Below, piece by piece: positions 9,589-55,935 of a stretch of 64,000 nt of DNA (its first letter is position 1; every line of letters begins with the position of its first letter). Both the position numbers and the translations under genes were made by a program. The notes beneath the pieces were generated by a model. The model was given only the letters and a program-made list of their open reading frames with translations. It was not told the origin of the DNA and did not search any database. The stretch lies in sequence record MH460460.1. One strand, 5' to 3'.

Positions 9589-9645
9589 GTCTACAAATCG
9601 CTGTCCAAAATACCGCTCGAAACTCCCCTATTTTCTTGATATCCT
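9589..9645 (+). promoter_or_regulatory. Bipartite-box promoter, copy 1
   Basis: GTCTACAAA-N4-TGTCCAAAA-N29-TATCCT. Confidence 0.75.
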
Positions 9646-9707
9646 AAACCCTCTAGGGCGCATTGCGTCCACATACTGTCAATAACCCAAATAAAGGATT
9701 CATCTAT

Positions 9708-10043
9708 ATGTCTACTATCTCTGACGTGAAAGGTATTGTTGCTTGTGTACTGGCTAACCCGGTTACGCTTCCTCTTACTGTTGCGTTTGGTAGCGCTCAC
9801 GTCGATCCGGAATACCAACTCGAAATAACCGAGCGCGATATGCAGGATGTAACGCCGCTCGATCTGGAAGAACAGACAGTGCTTCTTAATGCACGCATCG
9901 ACGCTAATAAAAACGTGCGTTACATTTTAATCGGCGAGTGGAATGCGCTCGAATCTTTCATGAAAGAAAATTTCCGCGTCGGTAGTTATCATTCGTACAT
10001 GCAGAAACTTGAAGCCGAAGATAAATACCGCAACAAGATTTAA
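9708..10043 (+). CDS. Hypothetical protein
   Basis: AAGGA RBS, ATG 9708, directly downstream of promoter copy 1. Confidence 0.8.
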   Translation: MSTISDVKGIVACVLANPVTLPLTVAFGSAHVDPEYQLEITERDMQDVTPLDLEEQTVLLNARIDANKNVRYILIGEWNALESFMKENFRVGSYHSYMQKLEAEDKYRNKI

Positions 10044-10105
10044 ATAAAAGCTCATGCGCTCAAACAAGGGCGCATTTCTCTCAAAATCGTTTAAGGATAA
10101 ATTTT

Positions 10106-10585
10106 ATGTACACGTTAAATCAAATCGTTCAGAAGATCATTAACCACGTTCCGGACGTGGCAGAAATCAGTCACATCGAATTCATTCATAAAAGCGGTTG
10201 TGATTATGTTTACTTCCAACTGCACGGCATTACTTATCGTGTTGATGCTGGCTTGTCTGTTGAAGAGAAAGACGGTTCGTTTTTAGTTTCTTCTCAGGCC
10301 GCACGAAATATTCAGGCTGTTCTCCGTGGCGAACGTAAAACGCTTATCAATACAGAAGCGCGTAACAAAGCGGTTGACGATATCGTTAACAACGCATCGC
10401 ACATTGAATTGCAGGAAGTTCTGATCGGTATTGGCGAGCCGGAAGAAGGTTCGTTAGAAGAGTTGCAGAAAGCGGTGCGTGATTGGCTGCACGGCGATAG
10501 CAAAATGCTGATCGAGAAAATGGAAATCATCTGGCTGTTCTTCGGTCATGATAAAGCAACTGCATTCAATGAGGCGTTTCGCTAA
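10106..10585 (+). CDS. Hypothetical protein with HeH/SAP-like C-terminal module
   Basis: SHIELQEVLIGIGEPEEGSLEELQKAVRDWL resembles the SAP/LEM/Rho-N pattern. Confidence 0.75.
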   Translation: MYTLNQIVQKIINHVPDVAEISHIEFIHKSGCDYVYFQLHGITYRVDAGLSVEEKDGSFLVSSQAARNIQAVLRGERKTLINTEARNKAVDDIVNNASHIELQEVLIGIGEPEEGSLEELQKAVRDWLHGDSKMLIEKMEIIWLFFGHDKATAFNEAFR

Positions 10586-11100
10586 TGGACATTCAAACGA
10601 TTTTGAAATACACGCCGGAACAGTACAAAGAAAAAGTAACTGTTGCCCTCAACAACTACGCGCCGATTGTTGAACAATTTCAGGAAGAGATTTTCACGCG
10701 ACTTAGAGAAGTGTCAAACAAGCCATACATCACGGCAGCAAGTGAATATCTCTTTCCGGTGAAAAACATTTCTATTTATATGCGCTACGGCGCTGGTCGT
10801 GCTGGTCGCTACGGTCATGATACATTGTGCATTGCGAACATCGAAGTTCCAAAACGTCTGGAACACAAAGGCTTCTTTACTGCGCTGATCTTTTCTCTGA
10901 TTGCAGAATGCCAGCAACGCAAAATCATTCTTATGGTGGAGAATCCGCTGGAAAGATTCTTTCAGGATTTTCTTTTGCGTATTGGTTTTATCTGTCCGAA
11001 CCGAAATGGTTTAGGGATCGGCACTTTCCATCGTCCGATTGACGAAGGCCAGATTAGCCTTTACCCGTTCTACAATATGGATAAAGAACATGCAGAATAA
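10585..11100 (+). CDS. GNAT-fold acetyltransferase-like protein
   Basis: IANIEVPKRLEHKGFF resembles motif A; FLLRIGF resembles motif B. Confidence 0.55.
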   Translation: MDIQTILKYTPEQYKEKVTVALNNYAPIVEQFQEEIFTRLREVSNKPYITAASEYLFPVKNISIYMRYGAGRAGRYGHDTLCIANIEVPKRLEHKGFFTALIFSLIAECQQRKIILMVENPLERFFQDFLLRIGFICPNRNGLGIGTFHRPIDEGQISLYPFYNMDKEHAE

Positions 11101-11515
11101 TTACGCTGTTAATATGGTCGCTGGTTTCATTCGTGAGATAGCGCGAGCGCCGCATCGAATCTTTAACGAAGTTCCAATTCGTTTTGGTTCCGGCGAAACT
11201 GTTGTGTCAGTAGAAAAAGAATCGCACGCAGTTGTTGCAACGTTAGTTGATTGTCCGATTGAATCGCACGAAGAACTTTTAGCATTCGTTAATGCTACGT
11301 TCAAACAGCTTTCCGGATATCGCGCTACGTTGCGTTTTCTTGGCGGTACGGATCTGAATCAATACGCCGACGATCATTTGCATGAACTCACTGAACACTG
11401 GCAATGCAAATATGATGTTGTGCGAACTGGTTATTATTCTCTGGAAGTGTTTCGTTGTCTTCCATACAAAGAAGGGCGAAAAAGTGAAATTTCGCAAACT
11501 GCTGACCCGCAATAA
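11090..11515 (+). CDS. Hypothetical protein
   Basis: ORF overlapping the upstream stop; start approximate. Confidence 0.7.
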   Translation: MQNNYAVNMVAGFIREIARAPHRIFNEVPIRFGSGETVVSVEKESHAVVATLVDCPIESHEELLAFVNATFKQLSGYRATLRFLGGTDLNQYADDHLHELTEHWQCKYDVVRTGYYSLEVFRCLPYKEGRKSEISQTADPQ

Positions 11516-11759
11516 AAACAGGCGCTCCATTTCCGCAAGCTGTTTTATCGGACGTTTGTTTTTCGAAATTGGCGTAGGGCGTGAGTTATGGTACTTCACG
11601 CGCTTTGGTAAAAATAACGATCATCGCATTTATCATTTGGTTCATGTGGGTGTTACGCGTCTGGTGAATCCTAGCGGCGAAGCGCACACTGATATGTTGG
11701 TGATCTCATTTCTCCTGCTGAATATTAAATTTGGCTGGATGACAATTAAGGATAAGTAA
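11484..11759 (+). CDS. Hypothetical protein
   Basis: Fills the gap; GTG 11484 chosen; TAATG overlap with the next gene. Confidence 0.5.
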   Translation: MKFRKLLTRNKNRRSISASCFIGRLFFEIGVGRELWYFTRFGKNNDHRIYHLVHVGVTRLVNPSGEAHTDMLVISFLLLNIKFGWMTIKDK

Positions 11760-11977
11760 TGGCTGATTACACCAAAGAAGTGCTTGAGCAAATGAACATT
11801 GCTCAACTCACTGACATTGCCGACGAGTTTCGTTTGTATGAGGATATGCACGACGACGATGACGCTCCTGATCAATCGGAAATGATTGAAGATATTCTGG
11901 CAGAACAAGAACGTTTGAGTCGTGCTAACGAATATTCTTTGAACCGTCTGAAAAATTCTATTCTTACGCGAGACTAA
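11759..11977 (+). CDS. Small acidic protein, stand-alone HeH/Rho-N-like module
   Basis: LEQMNIAQLTDIADEFRL...DQSEMIEDIL. Confidence 0.7.
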   Translation: MADYTKEVLEQMNIAQLTDIADEFRLYEDMHDDDDAPDQSEMIEDILAEQERLSRANEYSLNRLKNSILTRD

Positions 11978-11978
11978 A

Positions 11979-12737: not shown

Positions 12738-12897
12738 TTTAGCCGTAGCGTTTGCCCTGTACATTTGCTTTATCCTGTTTGACGCGTTTGTTTATCACGT
12801 CTCACAACCTGTTCGCATGTTCGTTATTTTCATTGCGAGCGTATTCTTCGGTCACGCTTTGTTTCAGGCGTTTCCGATCAGGAGTCGTCGGTCATGA
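12640..12897 (+). CDS. Small two-TM membrane protein (start uncertain)
   Basis: Hydrophobic segments ISLAVAFALYICFILF and MFVIFIASVFFGHALF. Confidence 0.5.
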   Translation: MSILTRTQSLLRRKIFSPLLAILFSTKRRARISLAVAFALYICFILFDAFVYHVSQPVRMFVIFIASVFFGHALFQAFPIRSRRS

Positions 12898-12989
12898 TTG
12901 AGTACGGCGACATAAAATTCCATATGTCAAACCGTCGATTCTGGTTTTGGATCGCGGTTGCACTATTTCTTATAATCTCTCTTAATTGA
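12894..12989 (+). CDS. 31-aa membrane peptide (below the ORF-track cutoff)
   Basis: GGAG RBS, ATGA overlap, MIEYGDIKFHMSNRRFWFWIAVALFLIISLN. Confidence 0.55.
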   Translation: MIEYGDIKFHMSNRRFWFWIAVALFLIISLN

Positions 12990-13003
12990 GGAAAGGTACT
13001 AAA

Positions 13004-13931: not shown

Positions 13932-13939
13932 GGTGAGCT

Positions 13940-14626: not shown

Positions 14627-14683
14627 ATACACAAATCCTTGTCCAAAATCTAGCTGGTTTTGGCTCCAGTTTTCAGGCATACT
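14627..14683 (+). promoter_or_regulatory. Bipartite-box promoter, copy 2
   Basis: ATACACAAA-N4-TGTCCAAAA-N29-CATACT. Confidence 0.7.
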
Positions 14684-23423: not shown

Positions 23424-23480
23424 CTCCGCAAATCCCTGTCCAAAAATCCGCTGTCTTTTCGCAAGCCTTTCCTGTATCCT
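23424..23480 (+). promoter_or_regulatory. Bipartite-box promoter, copy 3
   Basis: CTCCGCAAA-N4-TGTCCAAAA-N29-TATCCT. Confidence 0.8.
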
Positions 23481-23927: not shown

Positions 23928-24185
23928 ATGGCAGTTGGTTTCACAAAAGATGATGGTGTGCATGACACTATCGAAAGCAACACTCAAAACGAAATTGATT
24001 ATGCTCGCGCACAACTTATGGGCGCTGGAAGCAAACACTGTTTAGAGTGTGGTACGAAAATTCCAGAGGCGCGACGTAAAGTAATGCCTAACGCAAAATA
24101 CTGCGTCGCTCATCAAGCTGAACATGACGGTTCATCTTACACTTACTACAACCGTCGCGGTTCGAAAGACTCTCAACTGAGGTGA
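23928..24185 (+). CDS. ybiI: DksA/TraR-family zinc-finger protein, YbiI-like
   Basis: CLECGTKIPEARR...YCVAHQ and C-terminal YNRRGSKDSQLR, as in enterobacterial YbiI. Confidence 0.9.
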   Translation: MAVGFTKDDGVHDTIESNTQNEIDYARAQLMGAGSKHCLECGTKIPEARRKVMPNAKYCVAHQAEHDGSSYTYYNRRGSKDSQLR

Positions 24186-30071: not shown

Positions 30072-30731
30072 ATGGAAGCGCAAATTTTAGAACTGGCGTC
30101 ATTCACTGATAGCGAGATTGACGCACTGCATAATGTTCTTAGCGATCAAGAAGCGAAGACTCGCGAAGAGAAGATTAAGTTTCTTCTCTCCTATCAAAAA
30201 TCCTCCCCGACGATTAAATCGTTTCGTCCGTTCCTTGAGAATGGAATCAAACCTGCGAAACCAAAACCTGAAAAGGATTTGCCTGATCCGAAAATAATTC
30301 GAATGTACACGCGCCATAATAATCCAACGCCTTTGATTTTATATCTGGCGAGTTATGGATTGAGCGCAGATTTTATTGCAAGTGCAATCGTCGAACATTT
30401 CGAAGAAGGGCGTTTTGATTTTCCTTCGCAGATTCAAGTTGAGCAAATCATCGCCGCCGGAAAATACGAATTGGAACCTGTTGCATATCATATGCAGTAT
30501 ATTCGAATCTGCGAAGTTGCACGCCGATTCAGATTCAGCGGATACAATCTTTTCTATTCTCCGCTCTATTTCGATGGGTATCATGAATCACAAGGCGGTT
30601 GGGGAATGACGCTTTCAGAGAAGGATTCCCAAAAGTTCGGCTATGCCCTGTTAAGCGGCGATACGGTGCATTGCATTATTGACACCATAACGCATACTGC
30701 CAGATTCGACACTAATAAACTCCGCAAATAA
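30072..30731 (+). CDS. Hypothetical protein
   Basis: 219 aa; N-terminal HeH-like segment TDSEIDAL...TREEKIKFLL. Confidence 0.8.
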   Translation: MEAQILELASFTDSEIDALHNVLSDQEAKTREEKIKFLLSYQKSSPTIKSFRPFLENGIKPAKPKPEKDLPDPKIIRMYTRHNNPTPLILYLASYGLSADFIASAIVEHFEEGRFDFPSQIQVEQIIAAGKYELEPVAYHMQYIRICEVARRFRFSGYNLFYSPLYFDGYHESQGGWGMTLSEKDSQKFGYALLSGDTVHCIIDTITHTARFDTNKLRK

Positions 30732-30776
30732 GTGTCCAAAATTTCGGTAGAAATCTGGCTTAAATTTGGCTAAACT
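30720..30776 (+). promoter_or_regulatory. Bipartite-box promoter, copy 4 (overlaps the upstream stop)
   Basis: CTCCGCAAA-TAAG-TGTCCAAAA-N29-TAAACT. Confidence 0.8.
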
Positions 30777-30866
30777 TTTGAGACGGGCAGGCAATACCGC
30801 TTGTCCGTTGGGAAGCGGCATAGGCGTCTTTCCAAAGTAGGTGGTAACTTTAGAAAGGAGTCTTAC

Positions 30867-33722: not shown

Positions 33723-33731
33723 TTTTACTGT

Positions 33732-34013: not shown

Positions 34014-34051
34014 CGGCCTAGCGCAAAACAACTAGGAGAAAATAAATTCCA

Positions 34052-34665: not shown

Positions 34666-34722
34666 CTCTGCAAATTTGTGTCCAAAATAATGCTTGTTTC
34701 TGCCGCTTCGTTAGTTTAAGAT
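34666..34722 (+). promoter_or_regulatory. Bipartite-box promoter, copy 5
   Basis: CTCTGCAAA-N4-TGTCCAAAA-N29-TAAGAT. Confidence 0.8.
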
Positions 34723-38134: not shown

Positions 38135-38758
38135 ATGCGTTACGAACTGAATAAGCCTTATGTTTTCTTTGCAGCACAAACCGTTTTTGAAGATGGTCGC
38201 GTTGTTGAAAAGATGCACGCGTACCAATCAACAAATCCGAACGATGAACTGCGCGATATTAAATTTGTTGTTGCGCAGTGCAAAGAGCACCACAAAGTTC
38301 CGTGGGATCAAGATCCGAAAGGCGAAAAGAAATACGATGGTTTTATTTTCGAACTGCCTGATGGTGAAAAAGCAACGAACCAGTATCCGCACGCCAGCTA
38401 CGGTCAAATGTCTGACACTGCTGATGGTGTTATTTCTCTGCTCTCACATTACTACGAAAAGTTCGACAAAGACTTTGATAAGATTTCCGAAGCCGATGTT
38501 TATATCGAATACTTTTCTTTCCAGCGCCATATGGAAGCATTGGAGTCGGCGATTTATAAGTTTTCGCCGGAAGGAGATCGAAGCGATCCGGAGTATCACG
38601 CCAAACTGGTTGAGCGTCGCAATCTGCTGATTTCAGAACTGGCGAAACAGCTTAATATGACAATCCAATTCTCGCAGTACAGCGTGACAACCAAAGACGG
38701 CAGCGTTATCGCGCCTCCCGGATTATATCGCTCAGAGTTGGCTCCACTCTGCAAATAA
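38135..38758 (+). CDS. Hypothetical protein
   Basis: AGGA RBS before ATG 38135 (TTG 38126 also possible). Confidence 0.8.
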   Translation: MRYELNKPYVFFAAQTVFEDGRVVEKMHAYQSTNPNDELRDIKFVVAQCKEHHKVPWDQDPKGEKKYDGFIFELPDGEKATNQYPHASYGQMSDTADGVISLLSHYYEKFDKDFDKISEADVYIEYFSFQRHMEALESAIYKFSPEGDRSDPEYHAKLVERRNLLISELAKQLNMTIQFSQYSVTTKDGSVIAPPGLYRSELAPLCK

Positions 38759-38803
38759 GTGTCTGAAATACCGCTGGTAACATATACGCCTTTTCTGTAA
38801 ACT
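38747..38803 (+). promoter_or_regulatory. Bipartite-box promoter, copy 6 (variant TGTCTGAAA; overlaps the upstream stop)
   Basis: CTCTGCAAA-TAAG-TGTCTGAAA-N29-TAAACT. Confidence 0.75.
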
Positions 38804-42189: not shown

Positions 42190-42246
42190 CTCTGCAAAAC
42201 AGTGTCCAAAATAGCGATGGCATTTCGGCACTGAAATCTGTAAACT
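42190..42246 (+). promoter_or_regulatory. Bipartite-box promoter, copy 7
   Basis: CTCTGCAAA-N4-TGTCCAAAA-N29-TAAACT. Confidence 0.8.
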
Positions 42247-42339
42247 GTAGTCAGAGGCAAATGGCCTCAACAAGCGTGTAAGGATTTACGGGGTTTTCAC
42301 CTTACATGCTTTCAACGTAAATCCCAAAGGAAATAAATC

Positions 42340-44052: not shown

Positions 44053-44417
44053 TGCCAACAATCGAAGAAGTAAAAAACAGCGCAACCATTTATCAGTTTC
44101 TACACAATCCTTATGGTGTAGTTCGCGCCGGAACCTACAAGCCAAATCTTTTGGATTGTTGGGCGTTGGTTGTCGATACCATTCCGAAATGCTTTATCGC
44201 GCTTTGGGGAAAGATGTGTGAATTAAGCTGGCATATGTCGATTCGCCGTCTGCTTATTTGGTTGCTGTTTATGCCGTTCTGGATTCTGATTGTTGTGCCA
44301 ATGCCGCTCACTTTCTGGATTTGGGGAACGTATGTTTATTTCTACATGCGCGGCGAACCTGAGCGCCATAAGAAAGTTCAGGAACGTCTTAACCGGAAGT
44401 TAGATTCTCTAGTGTAG
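44052..44417 (+). CDS. Membrane protein
   Basis: LLIWLLFMPFWILIVVPMPLTFWIWGTYVYF. Confidence 0.8.
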   Translation: MPTIEEVKNSATIYQFLHNPYGVVRAGTYKPNLLDCWALVVDTIPKCFIALWGKMCELSWHMSIRRLLIWLLFMPFWILIVVPMPLTFWIWGTYVYFYMRGEPERHKKVQERLNRKLDSLV

Positions 44418-44473
44418 TCTGCAAAATAGTGTCCAAAATTTCGGTGGTTTTTGCCGCCTCGTTTTGATACACT
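44417..44473 (+). promoter_or_regulatory. Bipartite-box promoter, copy 8
   Basis: GTCTGCAAA-ATAG-TGTCCAAAA-N29-TACACT. Confidence 0.8.
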
Positions 44474-44479
44474 ATTTGG

Positions 44480-44553
44480 ACAGGGCAGCAATGCCCTACA
44501 AGATTCAACGTGAAGTGGAAACTTTTTGTAGGCAGGGAAGCCTACACTTTTTT
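44480..44553 (+). ncRNA. Putative ~73-nt small RNA
   Basis: Between promoter copy 8 and a terminator; 5' GCAA-tetraloop hairpin; no RBS-bearing ORF. Confidence 0.55.
44527..44553 (+). terminator. Intrinsic terminator
   Basis: TGTAGGC-AGGGAA-GCCTACA-C-TTTTTT. Confidence 0.8.
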
Positions 44554-44578: not shown

Positions 44579-44635
44579 CTCTGCAAAATAGTGTCCAAAA
44601 TTGCGATTGATAATATCGCTACTTTCCATCACTAT
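44579..44635 (+). promoter_or_regulatory. Bipartite-box promoter, copy 9
   Basis: CTCTGCAAA-ATAG-TGTCCAAAA; TTGATA at the -35 position; CACTAT at N29. Confidence 0.75.
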
Positions 44636-44701
44636 TTAATCTCACTCGGCGCAGTGCCGAAACAAACAAGCCTTAACTAATATTTCTTAGGAGAAATAAT
44701 C

Positions 44702-46315: not shown

Positions 46316-46381
46316 AAATTAACGGAATGGCGCGGTAACACTGCCGCGCTTCCTCAACCTATTTAAAAGTTTTAAGGAAAA

Positions 46382-47314: not shown

Positions 47315-47676
47315 TGGAAAAATCTGACGTGATCGTAAATGGAATCTTCGGTCAGGTTTATTCCCGCCTTGTTCTCGCCGCAACGCAACGCGTTCTTGTT
47401 TACTACAATGAATTGTGTCCTGTTGTTTTCGGCATTCAGTTTTCAAAAATGAATAAAGAACAGGCCGATGTGATTTGGGATATTCTGATCGAAACAATGC
47501 GTATGGATGCGAAGGCGGGGCGGCTTCCTCTCGCCGCTCTTTATATCTCGCGCAAGTATGAAAAGAAACCCGGCGCAGGCTTCTGGTCTGCATATCACAC
47601 ATTTTACGGCTCTGAAATCTCGGAAGATGAGTGGTCTGAACTTGTGGAAAAAATCTGGAATTCATATTCCATGTAG
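47314..47676 (+). CDS. Hypothetical protein
   Basis: TAATG overlap. Confidence 0.8.
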   Translation: MEKSDVIVNGIFGQVYSRLVLAATQRVLVYYNELCPVVFGIQFSKMNKEQADVIWDILIETMRMDAKAGRLPLAALYISRKYEKKPGAGFWSAYHTFYGSEISEDEWSELVEKIWNSYSM

Positions 47677-47684
47677 GAACGATC

Positions 47685-48161
47685 ATGAAAAAGAAATTTA
47701 CTCCGAAAATCCCGCGCTCGAAGGTTGTGCCGCCTAGCGAGCGTGCCGAAATGGATCAGCTTGTCGCCTATTATCTTTCATCGGTAGGTAACAGCATGAC
47801 GATGGTAACGCAACTGACGTTCTTCAACGTCACGAACTACTGGCACATGACAGACGTTCACGATCCCGAAGCGTCCACGCAGAAGAATCACAAACTTCTG
47901 CGTGAGATAACGCAAAAGCTGAACAAATACTGTAAAGATAATGGGAAGCCTCTTTCTTTGCTTCCTTTGCCCGATCAGCCCGGCGTTGAATTGAACGGCG
48001 AAACTGTTGTGGTAATTCCGTGGGAATTTTTAAATACCACGGAATCGCGTCAAGCTGTTGATGCGTTATTCGAAATGGTATCTGCGAATGGTAATACAGA
48101 TCTGGTTGCAGATGCTGATCTGAGGGATAAATATGTTTTTAGGGCACCTACTGACGTTTGA
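47685..48161 (+). CDS. Hypothetical protein
   Basis: AGGA RBS. Confidence 0.8.
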   Translation: MKKKFTPKIPRSKVVPPSERAEMDQLVAYYLSSVGNSMTMVTQLTFFNVTNYWHMTDVHDPEASTQKNHKLLREITQKLNKYCKDNGKPLSLLPLPDQPGVELNGETVVVIPWEFLNTTESRQAVDALFEMVSANGNTDLVADADLRDKYVFRAPTDV

Positions 48162-49401
48162 AGATCGTCAAAAGCTGTTAAAACTTTATGGCTGGAAAAT
48201 CATTGATACCTCCCCAAAGTATCTTGAATCTTCCAAAATGGTTTGTGGCGTTCGCCATGTTCGAACTAAGTACGGTGCGCGTGAGCAAGTGTATGATATT
48301 TTGTTCCCGCGCATTCGTGCGAAAACGGTTCTGCGTTTGTTTAAAAACTTGCGCCGTGGTCAACGTGGAATGCTGTTAGAACAAATTTCAATTCTGTTCG
48401 AATTGGGATTGGGTGTTCCGAAGCAAAAACAAATCGCCGACTATATCCTGCATTTAGACAATGTGGACGATCAGGAAGTTGGAATCAAGTACATTGGTAA
48501 ACTGATAAAACAGTACATCGCCAATTACAAGTTTTCGATGGACGATCATGATTACATGTACTGCGCTCAATTCACTGAGCAATTGTTGCTGATGAAGAAA
48601 TTCATCGGGAAGACAAAACAGAACGTGAAAAAATCAGTGCGCGTTCCGGAAGGAAAGCCGTGTGTTATGGTTTATTCGCTGACTGACTTCAACGGTGCGA
48701 AATTCAGTTTGGTAGATGCTTACGCATTTTCATCGAACGGTTTTCCGATACCGATTTCAACATCTGTGATGCGAAAAGAGTTTGGTGCTGTCCCGCGCCA
48801 GTTTAACAGCTACGCGTTGAAGTCGCACGGACAGTATATGTTGGTTTTCGGTATTCTACATTGGAACGAAGACGGCGAAGAAAACTTCCAGCACATGCAA
48901 ACGCTGGACGATGATGAATACGAAGTTCTGGTTGACCATTACGATAAGTATTGTTCGAAAGAACTTCTTGCGATGCGCAAGTTCCGCGATGTTGATCGCG
49001 AAGTGCATAACGCACATCGTCACGCAATTGAAGTTCTGGCAGTTAAAGAAGATGCAACCAAAAAAGAAAGGCGTCTGGTTCGCGAAGCGGAAACATATTT
49101 CGCTGAACGTGAGAAAGCTGTAAAGCAACTATCACGATTAGAACGAAAGGCCGCGAGCAAACTTGCTGAATCTGGCCCGGTTGCTTCTGCTCAATTCTTC
49201 GCTCTCGATATCGGGGCAATTGGAATTAGCCGCAAGCTGCGTACATTGGTTAGCACACCGCCTGAAACTCTCGCGAAAAGTTTAACCGCGTGGGGATTCA
49301 CAACGGCGTTGAATGCGAATCCTAAATGTCTATCTTCTCGAATCTATTACGGCGTAACTTCTACGCGCCGTAGCTGGCAAATTGAAACGGAGAAAAAATA
49401 A
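48133..49401 (+). CDS. Basic hypothetical protein
   Basis: 422 aa; TAATG overlap with the next gene. Confidence 0.8.
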   Translation: MFLGHLLTFEDRQKLLKLYGWKIIDTSPKYLESSKMVCGVRHVRTKYGAREQVYDILFPRIRAKTVLRLFKNLRRGQRGMLLEQISILFELGLGVPKQKQIADYILHLDNVDDQEVGIKYIGKLIKQYIANYKFSMDDHDYMYCAQFTEQLLLMKKFIGKTKQNVKKSVRVPEGKPCVMVYSLTDFNGAKFSLVDAYAFSSNGFPIPISTSVMRKEFGAVPRQFNSYALKSHGQYMLVFGILHWNEDGEENFQHMQTLDDDEYEVLVDHYDKYCSKELLAMRKFRDVDREVHNAHRHAIEVLAVKEDATKKERRLVREAETYFAEREKAVKQLSRLERKAASKLAESGPVASAQFFALDIGAIGISRKLRTLVSTPPETLAKSLTAWGFTTALNANPKCLSSRIYYGVTSTRRSWQIETEKK

Positions 49402-52349
49402 TGAATTCCTCTCAAACTTTCGGAACCGCCGCACATGCGGCAACTGTTACGGAACAGAATCTGAATGCAGGTTCTCCGGCAACTAAAAGCACGGTAATTG
49501 TTGTGCTGTGTCCGACTGTAAACGGCAACCAAATTTTCCGTGCGGAAAATAGCGGCAATGTTTCTCAAACAGTCGCGCAGGGTAAAGCGCTTAATCGTCT
49601 GACTGATCTTCTGGCGATGGCAGGCGATAACGCTGGTCATGAACTGATGAGCGCTGCCGCTTCTATCGACGAGCGCTGCAAGCTGAAAGACAGTGCTGCG
49701 ATGATTCTTCGCTATACTGTAAATGGTAGTGTAGAACGTCTCCAGAAAACTTTGTCTGAGGCGTTGTTTAAGGTCGGCGAAAAAGCTGCAAATGATAATA
49801 CTACGTTAGCGTCGTATGCCAGTCGTTTTGGTGTTCACGCAATCGCGGTATCTGCGGAAAGTAATTCATACGCAATCGTTACAGCGATTCGTGATCAACT
49901 GGAAGCGTTCGACCGCAACGAAAGCAATTTTATCGTTGCGCAGAAAGCAAGTGTTGAGCAAATCAATGCTCCGGTTATCGACTGGTCTGCAACTTCCGCA
50001 AACGTTGTTCTGGAAGGTGCTGCGTTAAGTTTTGTAGTTCGCTCGGAAAAAACCCGCGTGAATTTCCTGATTAATCCTATTAAGGGGAATAATGTTGTGA
50101 GTAACGATCAGAAAGCTCTGTCTGTTTTCAGCCGCGAAAATCAGGCGTCCGTAACTATGGAAGAAAAAGTCGCTGCACTCGAAGCTCTCGGTTACGATCT
50201 CGGCGCTATGCCGGATGAAGAAATTGCGCTGTCCTACGATAGCGAGCGCGTTGATTTTCTGGAAGGCGCTGGCGTTGAAGTAAACTCCGGCGACGAAGGC
50301 GAAACTGACGACGCCGAAGAATCGGAAGAAGATTCCGAAGAAGGCGAAGAGGAAGAGGAAGAAGAGGAAGACGATTTCTCCGCTTCTGAAACTCTGGCAG
50401 AAATTCTGACTAACGCCCAACTGGATCGCGCTCAACTGAAAAAGCTGGTGTTCCTCGCAGGCGGTAAAGTGTTTACCTCCGACACCGAAGAAACTCTGAC
50501 GGTGAAACTGCTGGAACTGGTCGAAGATAAAGACTACAGCGAATTCTTCCAGTTTGCGCTGGACGCTAATGAACGTCTCGGCGGCGTTGAAGGTTTTGCT
50601 GATTTCCTTCACAACGAAAGTGTTCTCGCTACCGACGAAGAAGAATCTGAGGAAGAAGATTCCGAAGATGACGGCGACGAAGGCGACGATGCCGAAGGCG
50701 ACGACGATGATTCCGAAGATGAGGATGATTCGGAAGACGAAGATGGCGAAGATGAAGACGACGAAGACGAAGAAGATCTTTCCTTCAACTCTGTTGTCGA
50801 ATTCATCGAACTGATCGGCGGCGATCTGAATCGCGAAGTTATTCGCGCAATTGCTCGCTCCGAAAACTTCGGCCTGAAAACTTACAAGAACGAAGACGCT
50901 GCTGCAATCTTCGAACGTGTAGTTGAAGTGCTGAACAATAACGAACTTTCTCCGGAAGATTTCGAACAACTGATTCACGATCTCGCGCAGATCGAAGTTG
51001 TTGCCGCTGCCTATCCGGAATGGGCTGAGTACGAAGTCAATCCGACTGACTACACTGAACTGTTTAACTTCGAAGGCGGTTCCCTGTCTCACGAACAGCG
51101 CGTTGCCGCTCTCGAAGCTGCGGGTAACGATCTCGAAGGTATGGGCATGGTTGCCGTGCTGAAACTCTTCGAAGAGTATCGCCGCGAAAATGGTTACGGT
51201 CAGGAAAGCGAAGAAGCTGCTGACGAAACTTACGCGCTGGATTCTGATGCGGAAGACGAAGGCGAAACTGACGAAGGCGACAACGCCGACGAATCTTCCG
51301 ACGAAGAGGAATCCGAAGAGGAAGAATCTGAGGAAGAAACCGAAGAAGAAAACGACGAAGCGTTTGTTTCCGATTCTTCTGAAAGTGATATCGGTACTTT
51401 CCTGCGTGTTCGTCAGGAACAAATGCTGCTGGTCAACTTCACGCTGACTGATCGCAGTACGTTTGAAGATCTCGCCGAAGAACTGCGCGATCAAAACGGT
51501 GTTGATTACCGCGTACCAATCAACATGAACGACGAAGCCGAAGGTTCTATGTACCTGCCGCTGACTGTCGCGAGCGATCTGCTGTCTGGTTCTGCTGCGC
51601 TGCCGTTCATGTCTGATCGCAAAACTTTCAACGTGGAAGACTACGCTGAAAAACTGGCTAACACTATGCGCGGTCAAATTTCTGCGCTGCTGTATGAAGG
51701 CCGTCTGGAAGCTGGACAAGATCCGTACACTAGCGGTCTGGTGCTCGGTGATTTCGTTGAAGACGAAGACGAAGATCTGGATGAAGACGAACTGAGTTCT
51801 GACTATCTGAACGAACTGGTCGGCGATCACATTCCGATGGCGTCTCTGTACAACGCACATGTTGGCGTGCGTCCGGTTGTAGTTGATACCGAAAGCACTG
51901 TTCTGAATACCATCGTGCTTAACATTGCAATGCCTTGCATTTGGGGCATCGGCAAGAAGAAAGTAAAAGATCTGGTAATCAGCACTTACAACCGTGTGCT
52001 TGCGCACATCGGCGAAACCGATATTAAAGTTTATGTTGGTTTCACGCTGAATTCCGGTTCACTGGTTTCTGATGAAAACCTGCAATTGGTTGTTCGTTCT
52101 GTTGGCGAAATGGCAAGCGAAGAAATCGCGGTGCATTCTTTCTCTTCTAACGATGTTCAGCGCATCGAAGAAAGCGAAGATCTGGTTGAAGCCGCGCATT
52201 CTGTCGGCACCGAAAACCTGCCGCTGGCGCTGCTGTCCTCCGGTATCGCTGACGCTGCATTTGCGAACGGCGGTGATCTGATTGTGATTCTGTCTCCGGC
52301 GGGTGATAGCGAAGACTACTCCGACGACGAAGACGAATCCGAAGAGTAA
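49401..52349 (+). CDS. 982-aa very acidic modular protein
   Basis: Several D/E tracts alternate with duplicated helical modules. Confidence 0.9.
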   Translation: MNSSQTFGTAAHAATVTEQNLNAGSPATKSTVIVVLCPTVNGNQIFRAENSGNVSQTVAQGKALNRLTDLLAMAGDNAGHELMSAAASIDERCKLKDSAAMILRYTVNGSVERLQKTLSEALFKVGEKAANDNTTLASYASRFGVHAIAVSAESNSYAIVTAIRDQLEAFDRNESNFIVAQKASVEQINAPVIDWSATSANVVLEGAALSFVVRSEKTRVNFLINPIKGNNVVSNDQKALSVFSRENQASVTMEEKVAALEALGYDLGAMPDEEIALSYDSERVDFLEGAGVEVNSGDEGETDDAEESEEDSEEGEEEEEEEEDDFSASETLAEILTNAQLDRAQLKKLVFLAGGKVFTSDTEETLTVKLLELVEDKDYSEFFQFALDANERLGGVEGFADFLHNESVLATDEEESEEEDSEDDGDEGDDAEGDDDDSEDEDDSEDEDGEDEDDEDEEDLSFNSVVEFIELIGGDLNREVIRAIARSENFGLKTYKNEDAAAIFERVVEVLNNNELSPEDFEQLIHDLAQIEVVAAAYPEWAEYEVNPTDYTELFNFEGGSLSHEQRVAALEAAGNDLEGMGMVAVLKLFEEYRRENGYGQESEEAADETYALDSDAEDEGETDEGDNADESSDEEESEEEESEEETEEENDEAFVSDSSESDIGTFLRVRQEQMLLVNFTLTDRSTFEDLAEELRDQNGVDYRVPINMNDEAEGSMYLPLTVASDLLSGSAALPFMSDRKTFNVEDYAEKLANTMRGQISALLYEGRLEAGQDPYTSGLVLGDFVEDEDEDLDEDELSSDYLNELVGDHIPMASLYNAHVGVRPVVVDTESTVLNTIVLNIAMPCIWGIGKKKVKDLVISTYNRVLAHIGETDIKVYVGFTLNSGSLVSDENLQLVVRSVGEMASEEIAVHSFSSNDVQRIEESEDLVEAAHSVGTENLPLALLSSGIADAAFANGGDLIVILSPAGDSEDYSDDEDESEE

Positions 52350-52358
52350 TCTGTAAAT

Positions 52359-52392
52359 AAATGGTGTGGGGCAAATTGCTCTGCACCATTTT
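52359..52392 (+). terminator. Probable terminator
   Basis: AAATGGTGTGGGGC-AAATT-GCTCTGCACCATTT. Confidence 0.7.
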
Positions 52393-52403
52393 AAGGATTC
52401 CTA

Positions 52404-53156
52404 ATGTCTGATACGCAAATTGAAGTTTTACATCGGACACTGTTTTCAACGCGTCAGTCACTTGATGAAAACATCATGGCACGTCGCGCAACCGAAAAGG
52501 TGTTGGATGAGCGCCTGAGTGAATTAGGCCGCTGTCAGGTTCAATTAAGCATTGCTCAAGAGCGAATTCTGAATCTCCAGACTGAATATAATAATGTTGT
52601 GGAGAAATCGGAAAGCAAAGCGAAGGATATGGAAGAAACTTTCCGTACCTCCGAAGCAAAGCTGAAAGAAGAAATAGTAATTCTGAACGACAAGATTTCG
52701 GAACTGCGTGCGCTCTGCCGTGATATGCCGGAAACTCCTGCGGAACAACTGCTGGAAAACGTACTGCATAAAACGATGGCGTATCTGCATTCGACTGTGG
52801 TGTATTTCGCTGCCCTCACGTTGAATTCCAATCCGCAATCTCTGGCTGGTAAAGAGTTGCTTGCGCTGACGAAAAAGCAAACCCTGAATCCGGGCAAATT
52901 GTTTTCACTATCTGTAAAGGAAAAGCAGATAGTCTTAGAAAACATTCGTTCGTTTGTGCAAGCAGAACTTGATAATTCTGAATACACAAACATCCGGGCG
53001 GTAATTACTGCAATGACCGCTTCGGATAAATCGTGGAAGACGTTTCGCGATAGCCTGAAAAATTCTAAGGTGCTTTTCTCACTCGCATCTGACAAACTGG
53101 AATTTGACTCTGCGGTAAACGCGGTCGTTGAATTCATTCTTGAACAATTGAAGTAA
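52404..53156 (+). CDS. Coiled-coil hypothetical protein
   Basis: AAGGA RBS; long heptad-like N-terminal half. Confidence 0.8.
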   Translation: MSDTQIEVLHRTLFSTRQSLDENIMARRATEKVLDERLSELGRCQVQLSIAQERILNLQTEYNNVVEKSESKAKDMEETFRTSEAKLKEEIVILNDKISELRALCRDMPETPAEQLLENVLHKTMAYLHSTVVYFAALTLNSNPQSLAGKELLALTKKQTLNPGKLFSLSVKEKQIVLENIRSFVQAELDNSEYTNIRAVITAMTASDKSWKTFRDSLKNSKVLFSLASDKLEFDSAVNAVVEFILEQLK

Positions 53157-53178
53157 TGAACGGGAGTTCGAAATAATC

Positions 53179-53757
53179 ATGGCTAAATCAAAGTCCACCT
53201 CACTGGTTCCGAAACGCATTGAGCGTATCACGAAAAAAGCTGGTGCAATCGCGCAGGTCAAATCCAAACAAACCGATCTGGCGCACGATATCGAAATCTC
53301 GACTCGCGGCGCACACGAAGTTTCCGGTTTCGTGATCGAAGTTACCGCTGACGATAGCGTAACGATCCGCCACAAGAAAGGCGCTGGTAGTTCCAAACAG
53401 ATCGTAAGCACGTTTACCAAAAACCAGATCATTAGCTTTATCGGTGAAGCTGGCGGTATGGGGCAACTGCTGGTTGACGCGTACATGGTTGTTCAGGTAA
53501 TTCGCGGTCAAACTGTAAAAGTTAAAGACGATGTGATTATCGCAACTGATATTCAGACTGGCGAAGTCACTCGCATCGCAACCAACATTCCGGGCTACGA
53601 TGTTCGCGCAATTGTTGACGAAGCTGTTGCTTCTAAAAAGTACGGCACTCCGATTGCAGTTGAAAAGAAAAAAGGCGCGGGCAAGGTAGAAAAAATTGCC
53701 AAAGGCGGCAAAGATAAGTCCGGTAAAAAGAAAAAGAAGTCTGACGAAAACTTCTAA
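53179..53757 (+). CDS. Basic beta-rich protein, possibly Sm/SH3-like fold
   Basis: Lys-rich termini; EVSGFVIEVTADDSVTI...KNQIISF recalls Sm-fold spacing (weak). Confidence is for the ORF. Confidence 0.8.
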   Translation: MAKSKSTSLVPKRIERITKKAGAIAQVKSKQTDLAHDIEISTRGAHEVSGFVIEVTADDSVTIRHKKGAGSSKQIVSTFTKNQIISFIGEAGGMGQLLVDAYMVVQVIRGQTVKVKDDVIIATDIQTGEVTRIATNIPGYDVRAIVDEAVASKKYGTPIAVEKKKGAGKVEKIAKGGKDKSGKKKKKSDENF

Positions 53758-53772
53758 TTCGGTTCCGGCCTG

Positions 53773-53853
53773 AATCTGTAAAGTAACGTTGAAGGACAGA
53801 ATCTGTAAATCAATTCTGTCAGACAGAAACTGTAAACAGTTAATGTCAAACGC
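53773..53853 (+). repeat. Degenerate 27-bp tandem repeat x3, each unit starting AAWCTGTAAA
   Basis: CTGTAAA at 53776, 53803 and 53830; GACAG ends units 1 and 2. Confidence 0.75.
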
Positions 53854-53961
53854 CACTGATTAATTTCGGTGGCGTCAGTTAAAAACATTTTTCTCTTAAT
53901 CTGTAAATAGTAATTGAACAAAGCGTTCATTACTGAACTTTCCTAAAGGATAAAATGAATC

Positions 53962-54744
53962 ATGGCTAAAGCAAAGAAAACCTCTAACGTAGCAATGGAA
54001 ACTCTGGCTAAAATGGCTGGCCTGCTTGTAGAAGCGGCTGCCGATGCAGAAGTTGCAGAACTTCTCGCCGAAGCCGGTCTGACCGTTGCCGCTAAAGGTA
54101 AAGGCAAAGCTAAAGCTGCTAAAGCTGAACCGAAAGCAAAAGGCGGCAAGAAAAAGAAAGTAACTGCCGCACAAATCGTTGAAGCCATCGAAGATGGTGA
54201 GTCCATCGAACTCGAAGGCACCGACGAAGAAGTTCTGCGCGAAGCCGTGGTCAAAGCGAAACTGACCAGTAAGAAAAAAGCGGCGAGCCTTGATGAAGAG
54301 GAACTGCTGGAACTGATTCAGGAAGCGTTGGGTTCTTCTGATGACGAAGAAGAAGACGACGAAGACGAAGACGACGAGGATGATTCTGATGAAGATGATT
54401 CCGACGACGAAGACGACGAAGACGAAGACGACGAGGATGATGAAGACTCGGACGACGACGAAGACGACGAAGACGGCGACGACGAAGATGATGAGGACGA
54501 CGAGGACGACGAAGACGAGGACGAAGATGACGAAGATGAAGATCGTGATCTGGAAGACCTCGACGAAGACGAACTCCGCGCGTTAGCCATCGAAGAAGGC
54601 GTGTTCACCAAAGCGCAGGCCAAAAAGAAAGACGAAGATGCACTCCGCGAAGCGCTGGAAGCTCACTTCGCTGGTGACGAAGATGAAGACGAAGACGACG
54701 AAGACTTCGACGACGAAGACGACGAAGACGAAGACGACGAGTAA
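53962..54744 (+). CDS. Bipolar protein: K/A-rich segment, two HeH-like modules, very long D/E tracts
   Basis: ~65-70 nearly pure D/E residues; modules DEEVLREAVVKAKL...DEEELLELI and DEDELRALAIEEGV...DEDALREAL. Confidence 0.9.
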   Translation: MAKAKKTSNVAMETLAKMAGLLVEAAADAEVAELLAEAGLTVAAKGKGKAKAAKAEPKAKGGKKKKVTAAQIVEAIEDGESIELEGTDEEVLREAVVKAKLTSKKKAASLDEEELLELIQEALGSSDDEEEDDEDEDDEDDSDEDDSDDEDDEDEDDEDDEDSDDDEDDEDGDDEDDEDDEDDEDEDEDDEDEDRDLEDLDEDELRALAIEEGVFTKAQAKKKDEDALREALEAHFAGDEDEDEDDEDFDDEDDEDEDDE

Positions 54745-54826
54745 TTAATCTTCAACTGCGGCACGCCCCGCTAAGTTGTATGACGAGCGCGGGGCAAAAA
54801 ATCTTCAAAAAACTTTGAAGAAAATT

Positions 54827-54863
54827 TTGTAGAAGTATGTTGAACATGCTAATGTACTTCTAC
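54827..54863 (+). promoter_or_regulatory. Sigma70-like promoter overlapped by an inverted repeat
   Basis: TTGTAG-N17-TAATGT with TG extension; GTAGAAGTA/TACTTCTAC inverted repeat. Confidence 0.55.
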
Positions 54864-54921
54864 GCAGAAAACGAATTCTGTTTTTACTCCACAACGAACA
54901 AATTGAATTTAAGGATTTATC

Positions 54922-55440
54922 ATGTCTAAGAAAGTAATCTCCGGCCTGAACAAACAAATCAAATCCATCGAAAAATCCGATGCCGCTCTGGTGAAGACCA
55001 TCGAAGGTTTGCAGAAACAGCGCGAAAATCTGGCGTCTACCAAAGACGGTCTGACCGAACAGGTTGCCGCTCTGTCCGGCGAAGCTGCTGCTCCGGCTGC
55101 TAAAGGCAAAGCGAAAGCTGAACCGAAAGCGAAAGCTGCTAAAGCTGATCCGAAAGGCAAAGGCAAAAAAGCCGCCGAAGAAAAACCGGCTAAAGCCAAA
55201 AAAGAAAAAGCTGCTAAAGCTGAGAAGCCTGCTAAGGCTGACAAGAAAGCGGCTAAAGGCGAAGGCAAAAAAGCCAAAGCTGAAAAGCCCGCCAAAGCTG
55301 ATAAAAAAGCTGCGAAAGGCGAAGGCAAAAAAGCCAAAGCTGAAAAGCCTGCTAAGGGCAAAAAAGTGAAAGGCGAAAAAGCCAGCAAGAAAAAAGGTAA
55401 AAACGCCGACGCAGGTTTTGAATTCGAACTGGACGATTAA
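54922..55440 (+). CDS. Histone H1-like (AlgP/Hc2-type composition) K/A/P-rich protein with N-terminal coiled coil
   Basis: AAGGA RBS; KAEKPAKADKKAAKGEGKKA repeats; assigned on composition only. Confidence 0.85.
   Translation: MSKKVISGLNKQIKSIEKSDAALVKTIEGLQKQRENLASTKDGLTEQVAALSGEAAAPAAKGKAKAEPKAKAAKADPKGKGKKAAEEKPAKAKKEKAAKAEKPAKADKKAAKGEGKKAKAEKPAKADKKAAKGEGKKAKAEKPAKGKKVKGEKASKKKGKNADAGFEFELDD
55216..55356 (+). repeat. 60-bp coding tandem repeat, ~2.3 copies, with synonymous divergence
   Basis: 20-aa period KAEKPAKADKKAAKGEGKKA. Confidence 0.85.
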
Positions 55441-55466
55441 TAGTTCCCTGCGCTGATTAAGTTGAT

Positions 55467-55499
55467 ACGGGTTAGGGATTATCTCCCTAGCCCGTTTTT
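55467..55499 (+). terminator. Intrinsic terminator
   Basis: ACGGGTTAGGGA-TTATC-TCCCTAGCCCGT followed by TTTT. Confidence 0.85.
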
Positions 55500-55533
55500 C
55501 GTTTCTGGTCGATTTTTCTCGATAGGTTTCCAA

Positions 55534-55875
55534 ATGGATCTTCACTCACGTTTCAAAAAACTTAACGAAGACTTGCTCGAACTTCAACAAGCTGTTCATC
55601 GCGTCGTTCGTATCTCTCCTTCAAAGTTCGCCGTTTGTTTTTATGATCGTCATGAGCAATCGCTTCGAACCAACGTTATTGATTCTCGTACAGCACACGA
55701 AATAAAACTCATTCAAGAAATGTCTGGCGCTGAGTTGCAATCCTATGGCGCTTTCGTTTCAGCCATTCAAGAATGGTGTGAAGCTGAATCCCCCGGTGAA
55801 TTCCCTATTCCATTAGACAAAGCAGACTCTGATAGCTACCGCACGCTAATTGATGCGATGACGATCCGGGAATAG
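55534..55875 (+). CDS. Hypothetical protein
   Basis: ATG 55534 after AGGT. Confidence 0.7.
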   Translation: MDLHSRFKKLNEDLLELQQAVHRVVRISPSKFAVCFYDRHEQSLRTNVIDSRTAHEIKLIQEMSGAELQSYGAFVSAIQEWCEAESPGEFPIPLDKADSDSYRTLIDAMTIRE

Positions 55876-55878
55876 CAA

Positions 55879-55935
55879 CTCTGCAAATCTGTGTCCAAAA
55901 CGTCGATAGCTTATCTAATACTTTCGTGCTAGAAT
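55879..55935 (+). promoter_or_regulatory. Bipartite-box promoter, copy 10 (drives the topoisomerase operon)
   Basis: CTCTGCAAA-N4-TGTCCAAAA-N29-TAGAAT with TG extension. Confidence 0.8.

Follow-up and report, generated by a model that had tools for sequence, protein, structure and literature searches.

Which protein reads a short bipartite DNA element that stands ten times before genes of Dickeya phage vB_DsoM_JA13 (JA13; MH460460.1; 254,061 bp; species Salmondvirus JA11) is the question raised by the last part of its genome. The stretch analyzed, referred to as the window, is 64,000 nt long and identical to the last 64,000 bp of the record, and a window position is the record position minus 190,061; positions below are those of the window unless the record is named. 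An earlier note on this DNA had placed the element, called the box here, upstream of a class of promoters and had ascribed its reading to a phage-specific activator or to an altered C-terminal domain of the RNA polymerase α subunit (α-CTD). Every gene of the window lies on the + strand, the majority being small orphans. The + strand block of JA13 runs from ~175 kb to 254 kb and on to 41 kb, and structural and replication genes lie in the - strand block at 41-175 kb. JA13 has no annotated RNA polymerase gene, and none turned up among the proteins scanned. These scans comprised Pfam on 250 JA13 proteins (99 from the window, 70 other plus-strand, and 81 small minus-strand proteins), NCBIfam on 169 of the 250 (the 99 window proteins and the 70 other plus-strand proteins), and PHROGs on 10 proteins, namely the first genes of eight box-driven operons with JA13_307 and JA13_322.

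The pattern STCYRCAAA-N4-TGTCCAAAA occurs in the window in eight exact copies (0.00 expected) and, at up to three mismatches, in ten (0.54 expected), the two non-exact copies each carrying two mismatches. All ten lie on the + strand, either in intergenic gaps or overlapping the last codons of the upstream gene; the positions that the earlier note had given for the ten copies, and its placing of all of them at gene boundaries, hold against the gene context, with about zero copies expected by chance. A scan with TGTCCAAAA over all 254 kb, run on six genome pieces, finds the bipartite box in this window only, in 10 copies. With a profile built from 29 sites, the ten boxes score 35-51 bits and the next best place in the 254 kb scores 8.4 bits. 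The description of the class as ten-membered is thus borne out by both motif and profile scans of the whole genome.

Promoter positions are numbered here with the hexamer at -12 to -7. A (T/C)AnnnT hexamer begins 29 nt after the box in all ten copies, with A(-11) and T(-7) each present in 10/10. At a spacer of 17 nt, the -35 slot begins with T in every copy and has G as its third base in nine. The box is followed by C-G-n-T-n-G, in which the conserved C(-38) and G(-37) are additions to what the earlier note had listed. From its 5′ side, the ten-site alignment conserves AA at -65/-64, cTCtGCAAAt from -63 to -54, gTGTCCAAAAT from -51 to -41, C(-38), G(-37), T(-35), and G(-33), a T-rich patch at -18/-17, and TA..CT from -12 to -7. 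The box itself is a 22-bp asymmetric bipartite element, cTCTGCAAA-N4-TGTCCAAAA, that spans -63 to -42 with its centre at about -52. Its halves resemble a direct repeat (T-S-T-S-C-AAA) set 12 bp apart, and dyad symmetry is absent as read from the sequence. In two copies the box begins within a gene: CTCCGCAAATAA encodes LRK and a stop, ending at 30731 with the stop of JA13_277, and CTCTGCAAATAA encodes LCK and a stop, ending at 38758 with the stop of JA13_295. The earlier note had reported the exact 29-nt distance, the T-initial and mostly TNG -35 slot, the two coding overlaps, and a box at about -63 to -42 with repeats 12 bp apart; each of these reappears in the ten-site alignment or at the gene ends. 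The -35 slot typically matches TTGACA at two to three of six positions (best case TTGATA), and a generic σ70 scanner run over window 38-57 kb does not call the box promoters. The box agrees with the consensus of the upstream (UP) element in its A-runs (-57 to -55 and -45 to -42) and nowhere else. The ten sites are one promoter class of JA13 with exactly ten members.

Comparison with relatives separates the constrained from the free parts of these promoters. Phage JA29 (88-91% identical) has each of the ten sites at the orthologous place. Over the ten pairs, JA13 and JA29 diverge by 16.2% in the upstream flank, 5.4% in the AA and box, 8.3% from -41 to -30, 15.9% in the spacer from -29 to -13, and 5.0% in the -10 hexamer, and this footprint is taken to show that selection acts on the box and hexamer and not on the spacer. 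Searching viral contigs and retrieved records for the pattern gave a pooled set of 47 non-redundant sites from eight genomes, the added sites coming from three uncultured relatives, the Erwinia phages Yoloswag, pEa_SNUABM_5, and pEa_SNUABM_33, and Dickeya phage AD1. The 29-nt distance between box and hexamer holds at 45 of the 47 sites; the two exceptions, both in AD1, have a hexamer no more than 1 nt out of register. Across the set, A(-11) and T(-7) are each found in 45/47, T(-12) in 36/47, T(-35) in 46/47, and G(-33) in 41/47, with the other -35 positions unconserved. The hexamers include TAAACT, TACTAT, TATACT, TATAAT, and TACAAT, and the sequence between the elements varies freely. On sequence grounds, such a fixed layout marks a composite promoter that is read as DNA. 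The profile search of the whole genome and of relatives, proposed in the earlier note as a check, thus returned the ten JA13 sites only, together with a layout that relatives share. Phage PaBG was considered as an independent replicate and found weak for the purpose: in the 60 kb examined, its own box, AAACATAACCnCTA, is followed after 29-30 nt by TATAAT or TATACT, and its two exact copies are probably one duplicated module.

The ten promoters, with their targets, are given below.

Promoter 1, 9589..9645, + strand: box 9589-9610, -35 slot 9617-9622 (TCGAAA), -10 hexamer 9640-9645 (TATCCT), predicted start ~9652; targets JA13_237-243, small orphans; 5′ hairpin GGGCGCAUUGCGUCC, z -2.2; ortholog in JA29.
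Promoter 2, 14627..14683, + strand: box 14627-14648, -35 slot 14655-14660 (TGGTTT), -10 hexamer 14678-14683 (CATACT); the most degenerate, with distal half ATACACAAA and 35.3 bits, the lowest of the ten; targets JA13_248 onwards; ortholog in JA29.
Promoter 3, 23424..23480, + strand: box 23424-23445, adjoining the stop of an RNA 2′-phosphotransferase gene, -35 slot 23452-23457 (TGTCTT), -10 hexamer 23475-23480 (TATCCT); targets JA13_266, JA13_267, and on through to UvsE.
Promoter 4, 30720..30776, + strand: box 30720-30741, its first 12 nt being the LRK-stop of JA13_277, -35 slot 30748-30753 (TAGAAA), -10 hexamer 30771-30776 (TAAACT); 10-bp 5′ hairpin; targets JA13_278-285, dUTPase last.
Promoter 5, 34666..34722, + strand: box 34666-34687, directly 3′ of a terminator-like hairpin GGAACCT...AGGTTCC with a T-rich tail (read from sequence), -35 slot 34694-34699 (TTGTTT), -10 hexamer 34717-34722 (TAAGAT); targets JA13_287-295.
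Promoter 6, 38747..38803, + strand: box 38747-38768 (proximal half TGTCTGAAA), its first 12 nt being the LCK-stop of JA13_295, -35 slot 38775-38780 (TGGTAA), -10 region TCTGTAAACT with hexamer 38798-38803 (TAAACT), a region that also matches the CTGTAAA motif class described below; targets JA13_296-300.
Promoter 7, 42190..42246, + strand: box 42190-42211, -35 slot 42218-42223 (TGGCAT), -10 region ATCTGTAAACT with hexamer 42241-42246 (TAAACT); 5′ hairpin, z -2.8; targets JA13_302-305.
Promoter 8, 44417..44473, + strand: box 44417-44438, -35 slot 44445-44450 (TGGTTT), -10 hexamer 44468-44473 (TACACT); first of a tandem pair and best of the ten at 51 bits; sole target the short terminated unit 44480..44553.
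Promoter 9, 44579..44635, + strand: box 44579-44600, -35 at 44607-44612 (TTGATA, best of the set), -10 hexamer 44630-44635 (CACTAT); targets JA13_306-313, the D/E-rich "acidic" cluster.
Promoter 10, 55879..55935, + strand: box 55879-55900, -35 slot 55907-55912 (TAGCTT), -10 hexamer 55930-55935 (TAGAAT); targets JA13_317 and JA13_318, the topoisomerase II large and small subunit genes.

The ten units span ~46 kb, with strings of orphan genes behind promoters 1, 2, 5, 6, and 7. Gene context upholds the targets that the earlier note had named, namely the topoisomerase operon, the acidic-protein cluster, and a putative small RNA (sRNA).

Evidence on the reader of the box comes from its variation among phages. 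Only positions -48/-47 are dimorphic across genomes, being TC at 29 sites and GT or GA at 18, and the variant sorts by phage lineage: Salmondvirus-type phages have TGTCC, and Yoloswag, Alexandravirus, and AD1 have TGGTC or TGGAC. In detail, TGTCC is carried by JA13, JA11, JA29, and the uncultured contigs 3300014590_000001, 3300031419_000010, and 3300031370_000002, and TGGTC or TGGAC by Yoloswag, pEa_SNUABM_5, pEa_SNUABM_33, AD1, and contigs 2974799593_000001 and 3300031370_000001. The variant is essentially uniform within a genome (10/10 in JA13, 9/9 in the Yoloswag segment). Dickeya solani MK10 was the isolation host of AD1 as well as of JA13, and TGTCCAAAA is absent from the 50-kb syntenic segment of AD1. 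The topoisomerase II promoter is orthologous in JA13, JA29, and Yoloswag, and its box variants differ between JA13 and Yoloswag. Similarly, JA13_306 is orthologous to Yoloswag gp313 (35% identical, E 3e-45), and the tandem boxes that precede both genes are of different variants. Because orthologous promoters carry different variants, the half-site change was concerted at pre-existing sites.

None of the Dickeya, Pectobacterium, and Erwinia genomes among 185,579 species representatives contains the exact JA13 box. In the whole 596-Gb set of representatives there are 31 exact matches, in unrelated taxa and about as many as chance would give, five of them being one Leclercia/Silvania locus. A host regulon was thus rejected, as the box is absent from host-genus representatives and the half-site follows the phage and not the host. 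Since the variant differs between phages of the same host strain, the specificity of the box is not explicable by a host protein, α-CTD included. The reader is most likely a phage-encoded DNA-binding factor that co-evolves with its sites.

It is proposed that the ten sites are host σ70 promoters with a weak -35 that would be controlled, and probably activated, by a phage-specific factor at -63 to -42, a reading given a probability of roughly 0.55. This was the first of the two possibilities in the earlier note, and the conserved layout, the JA29 footprint, the lineage switch, and the absence of the box from hosts all support it. The -63 to -42 interval is where α-CTD and upstream activators act. 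In the proposed mechanism, host RNA polymerase with σ70 would bind the core (TAnnnT -10, 17-bp spacer, and weak -35), and a phage-encoded, lineage-specific DNA-binding factor would occupy the box. The factor would most likely be an activator of class I type, compensating for the weak -35, a mode favored because of the position at -63 to -42 and the uniformly weak -35, and it could act through α-CTD docked on the A-tracts adjoining the half-sites. As a result, ~46 kb of co-directional early or delayed-early operons would be switched on, among them those for orphans, the TraR/DksA-like polymerase modulator, dUTPase, UvsE, acidic proteins, the sRNA, and topoisomerase II. We infer from sequence patterns the existence of a box-reading factor, together with the start sites, activation, timing, and use of host σ70.

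The assignment of the core to host σ70 draws on a comparison with the other promoter-like motifs of the genome. The -10 hexamer is of the σ70 (group 1) type by the test applied, and the -35 keeps only T(-35) and G(-33) of its six positions. A canonical σ70 promoter scan of the whole genome gave 29 scattered weak matches, mostly within genes; canonical σ70 promoters were therefore rejected as an early class, there being no such class in the genome. Generic σ70-like matches in window 38-57 kb number 13, against 21.1 ± 3.9 in shuffles, a deficit that suggests avoidance of spurious host promoters. The host polymerase needs a readable promoter at the start of infection, and the box class alone has a σ70-type -10, spacer, and partial -35, which argues that host σ70 reads it. 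Also on the side of host σ70 are the lack of an RNA polymerase gene in the annotation and among the proteins scanned, and a comparative study that places the clade with jumbo phages having no polymerase of their own and redirecting the host enzyme through phage sigmas (PMC7824862). The PaBG-like clade has moreover been reported to encode an RpoD-like sigma (PMC7412058), and its JA13 ortholog, JA13_221 (described below), has a different, single-element motif, CTGTAAA, in front of it. That the box class uses host σ70 and the single-element classes use phage factors is the most economical reading of these sequences.

Two such single-element motifs were found. The first, aATCTGTAAAta, lies ~30-45 nt before start codons on both strands, with no information outside its 10-nt core; there are 23 copies of the 10-mer AATCTGTAAA where 1.2 would be expected, and looser patterns give 39, many of them intergenic. 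This motif precedes the sigma-like gene, SSB, DNA polymerase, and replication and recombination genes. It is kept in Yoloswag, appears in PaBG as GTGTAAACA, and is one letter from the T4 late promoter TATAAATA. The aATCTGTAAA class fits the definition of a single-element promoter of the T4 gp55 type, whereas the box class, being tripartite, does not. The second of these motifs, (a/g)CTAATTT(T/A), stands ~25-35 nt before structural-gene starts on the - strand of record 50-166 kb and is probably a late promoter class. Several copies of aATCTGTAAAta directly precede a terminator-like hairpin, which is odd for a promoter. Copies of the two motifs include the following.

aATCTGTAAAta motif, window 544-553, 4743-4752, 32360-32366, and 52351-52357.
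aATCTGTAAAta motif in tandem, window 53776-53907 (four copies) and 59731-59805 (three copies).
(a/g)CTAATTT(T/A) motif, record 68318, 76200, 95262, 146130, 159252, and 165173, - strand.

Several points weigh against a phage activator on host σ70 promoters. No candidate DNA-binding activator was found by Pfam in the 250 JA13 proteins or by NCBIfam in 169 of them. If the box promoters are the earliest ones, the activator must be injected with the DNA or made from promoters not found here. Direct binding of α-CTD could be part of the effect, since the A-tracts found at -57 to -55 and -45 to -42 are similar to UP subsites. With its Y..WW melting motif preserved, the RpoD-like sigma JA13_221 might read TAnnnT itself. 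Gene conversion among promoters is formally conceivable as the source of the concerted half-site change. Lastly, the literature holds no transcript data for any member of the clade, and start sites and timing are predictions. For this clade of ~250-kb phages (Salmondvirus, Alexandravirus, Yoloswagvirus, and PaBG-like), no promoter, transcript map, or regulator was found described, and the motif words recur in the literature only in unrelated primer sequences.

The domain scans bear on what the factor could be. No Mor/C-, MotA-, AsiA-, Ogr/Delta-, or AraC-type protein was detected among the 250 JA13 proteins, and the sole transcription-related domain in the Pfam, NCBIfam, and PHROGs scans is the TraR/DksA zinc finger of JA13_267. 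Members of the TraR/DksA family bind the secondary channel of RNA polymerase. An "XRE regulator" of AD1 and a "DNA-binding protein" of PaBG, gp148, were set aside as readers, having no JA13 homolog. The two window genes concerned are as follows.

JA13_267, 23928..24185, + strand: TraR/DksA-family zinc finger (zf-dskA_traR, E 1.7e-9), in the promoter 3 operon.
JA13_322, 62485..63618, + strand: ortholog of PaBG gp112 (E 1e-26), clade-restricted and fast-evolving.

PaBG gp112 has been reported as weakly σE-like. JA13_322 is 49% identical to its Yoloswag counterpart, compared with 70% for JA13_221, and so evolves faster; it consists of a helical domain, a disordered linker, and a second helical domain. 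Its top Foldseek matches are σ70 chains, at a probability of at most 0.18. JA13_322 has no sequence match in the PDB, and hhalign against a sigma-like family gives a probability of 0.1. With no significant sigma similarity by PDB sequence, Foldseek, or hhalign, it was rejected as a second sigma factor, and it stands as a candidate sigma or box reader only.

Of the alternatives, the most serious, though itself an unlikely one, keeps the phage-encoded reader and reverses its sign. The A-tracts would act on host α-CTD as a UP-like element and so support strong early transcription; the phage protein, itself an early product, would bind the particular G/C positions, compete with α-CTD and displace it, and thereby shut the class off. 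No phage factor is present at the moment of infection unless it is injected, and the -10 hexamers of the TGGTC lineage are often at or near consensus (TATAAT, TATACT, TACAAT), which makes basal activity plausible; the A-tracts also stand at the positions of UP subsites. However, known repressors of phage early promoters usually have operators that overlap the core, whereas -63 to -42 is the classic position of an activator, and a -35 that uniformly keeps two of six consensus positions is typical of activator dependence.

A little less probable is that a phage sigma, JA13_221 possibly with JA13_322, reads the class, the box and CG-T-G forming an extended upstream element of its holoenzyme. JA13_221 (record 186322-187359, + strand, 2.7 kb upstream of the window; annotated hypothetical) is the ortholog of PaBG gp118 by synteny and BLASTP (E 4e-64). 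Its family has more than 200 homologs, some with Pfam Sigma70_r2, and the family profile matches RpoD/SigA regions 1.2-2.4 at E 6e-5. The best structural matches of its AlphaFold model (pLDDT 80) are all E. coli σ70, and the protein is laid out as sigma regions 1.2-2.4, a disordered linker, and a three-helix C-terminal domain, keeping the equivalents of Y430, W433, and W434. By these matches JA13_221 is a true sigma-family protein, and JA13_322 has a similar helical-linker-helical layout. Such a reader would also supply the lineage-specific trans factor that is needed, as the sigma-like proteins are clade-specific. Nevertheless, the genome would then be left without visible host-readable promoters with which to begin infection, and sigma region 4, at -35, cannot reach -63. 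In addition, JA13_221 is preceded not by the box but by the single-element motif CTGTAAA alone, a motif conserved across genera just as the sigma is (70% identity), whereas the half-site of the box switches. JA13_322, for its part, has no significant similarity to sigma factors.

It is less probable again, at long odds, that no dedicated factor exists and that host α-CTD, perhaps ADP-ribosylated, reads the box as a UP-type element, the lineage difference arising by concerted drift or gene conversion. The A-tracts do stand at the proximal and distal UP positions, the domain scans found no transcription factor, and JA13 encodes both a TraR/DksA-like polymerase modulator and an ADP-ribosyltransferase, JA13_190. 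The latter (record 163859-164536, - strand; 225 aa; annotated hypothetical) is a stand-alone ART-PolyVal protein at 96.8 bits that could be an Alt/Mod-like modifier of host proteins, modification of the host polymerase being conceivable. However, the invariant C-58, T-50, G-49, and C-46 are foreign to UP elements. Positions -48/-47 are fixed per genome (10/10 in JA13) and conserved in JA29, yet differ between phages sharing the host α, and the spacers between elements have diverged freely, which makes recent copying and pasting unlikely. ADP-ribosylation alone would not create a lineage-specific reading of G/C positions; the altered α-CTD, the second possibility of the earlier note, is therefore less likely, as a modified host subunit does not explain the lineage-specific G/C change.

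That the box is not a promoter element, being instead an RNA-level signal (processing or termination) at the 3′ ends of upstream operons or a recombination or packaging site, is very improbable: boxes lie right after stop codons, twice overlapping them, and would be present in read-through RNA, but the strict 29-nt register to TAnnnT with T-n-G at 17 bp over 47 sites is a DNA-level promoter signature, and the box has no dyad or stem potential (read from sequence) and no Rfam match.

A phage-specific factor on host σ70 promoters can also be compared with known systems. Class I σ70 promoters (CAP at -61.5) and UP promoters share with the box class a σ70-type -10, a 17-bp spacer, and a weak -35, as well as an element in the -63 to -42 interval and A-tracts at about -43 and -56. 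Unlike a CAP site, the JA13 box is asymmetric, lacks a dyad, has invariant G/C positions, and is held in register with the -10 to the base pair. The UP consensus is said, in work by Estrem and colleagues from 1998/1999, to span -59 to -38, with a distal AWWWWWTTTTT and a proximal AAAAAARNR. The JA13 box, by comparison, does not follow that A/T-rich consensus, and C-58, T-50, G-49, C-46, and -48/-47 lie off it.

Among phage activators, Mu Mor/C and P2/P4 Ogr/Delta likewise act upstream of weak-(-35) σ70 promoters in small coordinated regulons, a likeness of position. Mor, C, and Ogr bind sites with dyad symmetry, placed at about -33 to -55 or, as TGT-N12-ACA, at -55. The box of JA13 is by contrast asymmetric and direct-repeat-like, and no protein of these families was found among the 250 scanned; the comparison with Mu Mor/C made in the earlier note holds for position and goes no further, there being neither a Mor/C protein nor a dyad. 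JA13 resembles T4 as a large phage without its own polymerase that redirects the host polymerase, in its single-element late-promoter-like motifs aATCTGTAAAta and CTAATTTT (compare the T4 gp55 late promoter), and in having a sigma-like protein, an ADP-ribosyltransferase, and polymerase modulators. However, the T4 MotA box replaces the -35 at -30, whereas the JA13 box lies 12-33 bp further upstream and T-n-G is kept; JA13 -29 to -13 is unconserved (16% JA13/JA29 divergence), and no MotA or AsiA domains were detected. The upstream elements of T4 early promoters, for their part, are plain A-tracts. The box also resembles the marbox of MarA/SoxS/Rob promoters, an asymmetric bipartite site of ~20 bp, with GCA in its distal half and YCAAA in its proximal half about one helical turn apart, that lies upstream of or abuts the -35. 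The half-site spacing of JA13 is 2 bp longer, no AraC/XylS-type helix-turn-helix was found in the phage proteins scanned, and the host factors of the marbox are excluded because the box co-varies with the phage lineage. Overall, the class works like activator- or UP-assisted σ70 promoters and lacks the defining features of the Mor/C, Ogr, MotA, and UP families.

Downstream of the boxes, two RNA features recur. The sole target of promoter 8 is the following unit.

Putative sRNA, ~75 nt, 44480..44553, + strand: between the tandem boxes, with no annotated gene; z -2.6.

Its 5′ hairpin (~44482-44497) has a GCAA loop that does not vary; the middle part is variable, and after it come an intrinsic terminator at 44527-44546 and a T-run. 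The unit is kept in four other genomes, with three base pairs preserved despite changes on both sides. Rfam has no family for it, and none over the whole window. The label of putative sRNA for 44480-44553 appears reasonable. Small G+C-rich hairpins also stand at six of the ten predicted 5′ ends, at about +3 to +25, and at most orthologous sites of relatives, with examples on the + strand at the following positions.

5′ hairpins, 9656-9670, 30783-30808, 42254-42268, 44482-44497, and 44646-44660, + strand.

Being frequent only (6/10), the hairpin was rejected as a universal, defining feature. These hairpins may stabilise the RNA, bind a protein, or act in a nut-like way.

Further observations concern the genes and the genome at large. 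The products of JA13_306-315 (window 44702-55440) and their Yoloswag counterpart are extremely D/E-rich, with acidic runs of more than 60 residues in JA13_306; they may be DNA mimics or histone-like decoys. Words of the GACGAAGA type are the most over-represented in the JA13 genome. Two palindromes, TTCCGGAA (106 copies on both strands together, with 27.5 expected) and ATCCGGAT, are likewise strongly over-represented over the whole genome; codon pairs or a methylase- or restriction-related signal may be the cause, and JA13 encodes several DNA methyltransferases. Unannotated stretches of 266 nt to 1.2 kb lie at window 12738-13003 and 33723-34099 and at record 172221-173463, 76168-76859, and 77172-77907. 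The gene-free stretches at 77 kb and 173 kb hold CTGTAAA motifs, and that at 172.7 kb holds a TTAGCA-16-TATAAT match; long gene-free stretches may hide unannotated genes or RNAs. Among "hypothetical" proteins of the + strand of JA13 record 1-41 kb, Pfam finds Tad2-like (anti-Thoeris), Acb1 (anti-CBASS), GNAT, 2′-5′ RNA ligase-like, and ABC/AAA ATPase domains.

A fuller proposal, held at somewhat less than even odds, is that the PaBG-like jumbo phages that infect Enterobacterales would carry a fast-evolving and so far undescribed transcription factor without a recognisable DNA-binding domain, possibly JA13_322, which would together with host RNA polymerase read a composite promoter of ~55 bp. 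Its specificity would have switched from TGTCC to TGGTC together with about ten orthologous promoters, giving orthogonal pairs in one host. The box class would then form the first tier of a three-tier cascade, followed by the CTGTAAA class, which includes the phage sigma gene, and by the CTAATTTT class of structural genes.

The clade includes several phages under consideration as biocontrol agents against Dickeya and Erwinia. For JA13, the box class sets out ten transcription units along with a candidate small RNA, and it predicts a phage-encoded regulator missed by standard domain searches. As two phages with different box variants grow on the same laboratory host, a swap between them could prove the co-evolution of factor and site. 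Should the factor be found, it and its promoter would form an orthogonal promoter-activator pair of compact size; a box read by host polymerase alone would be an unusual upstream element that contains G/C positions.

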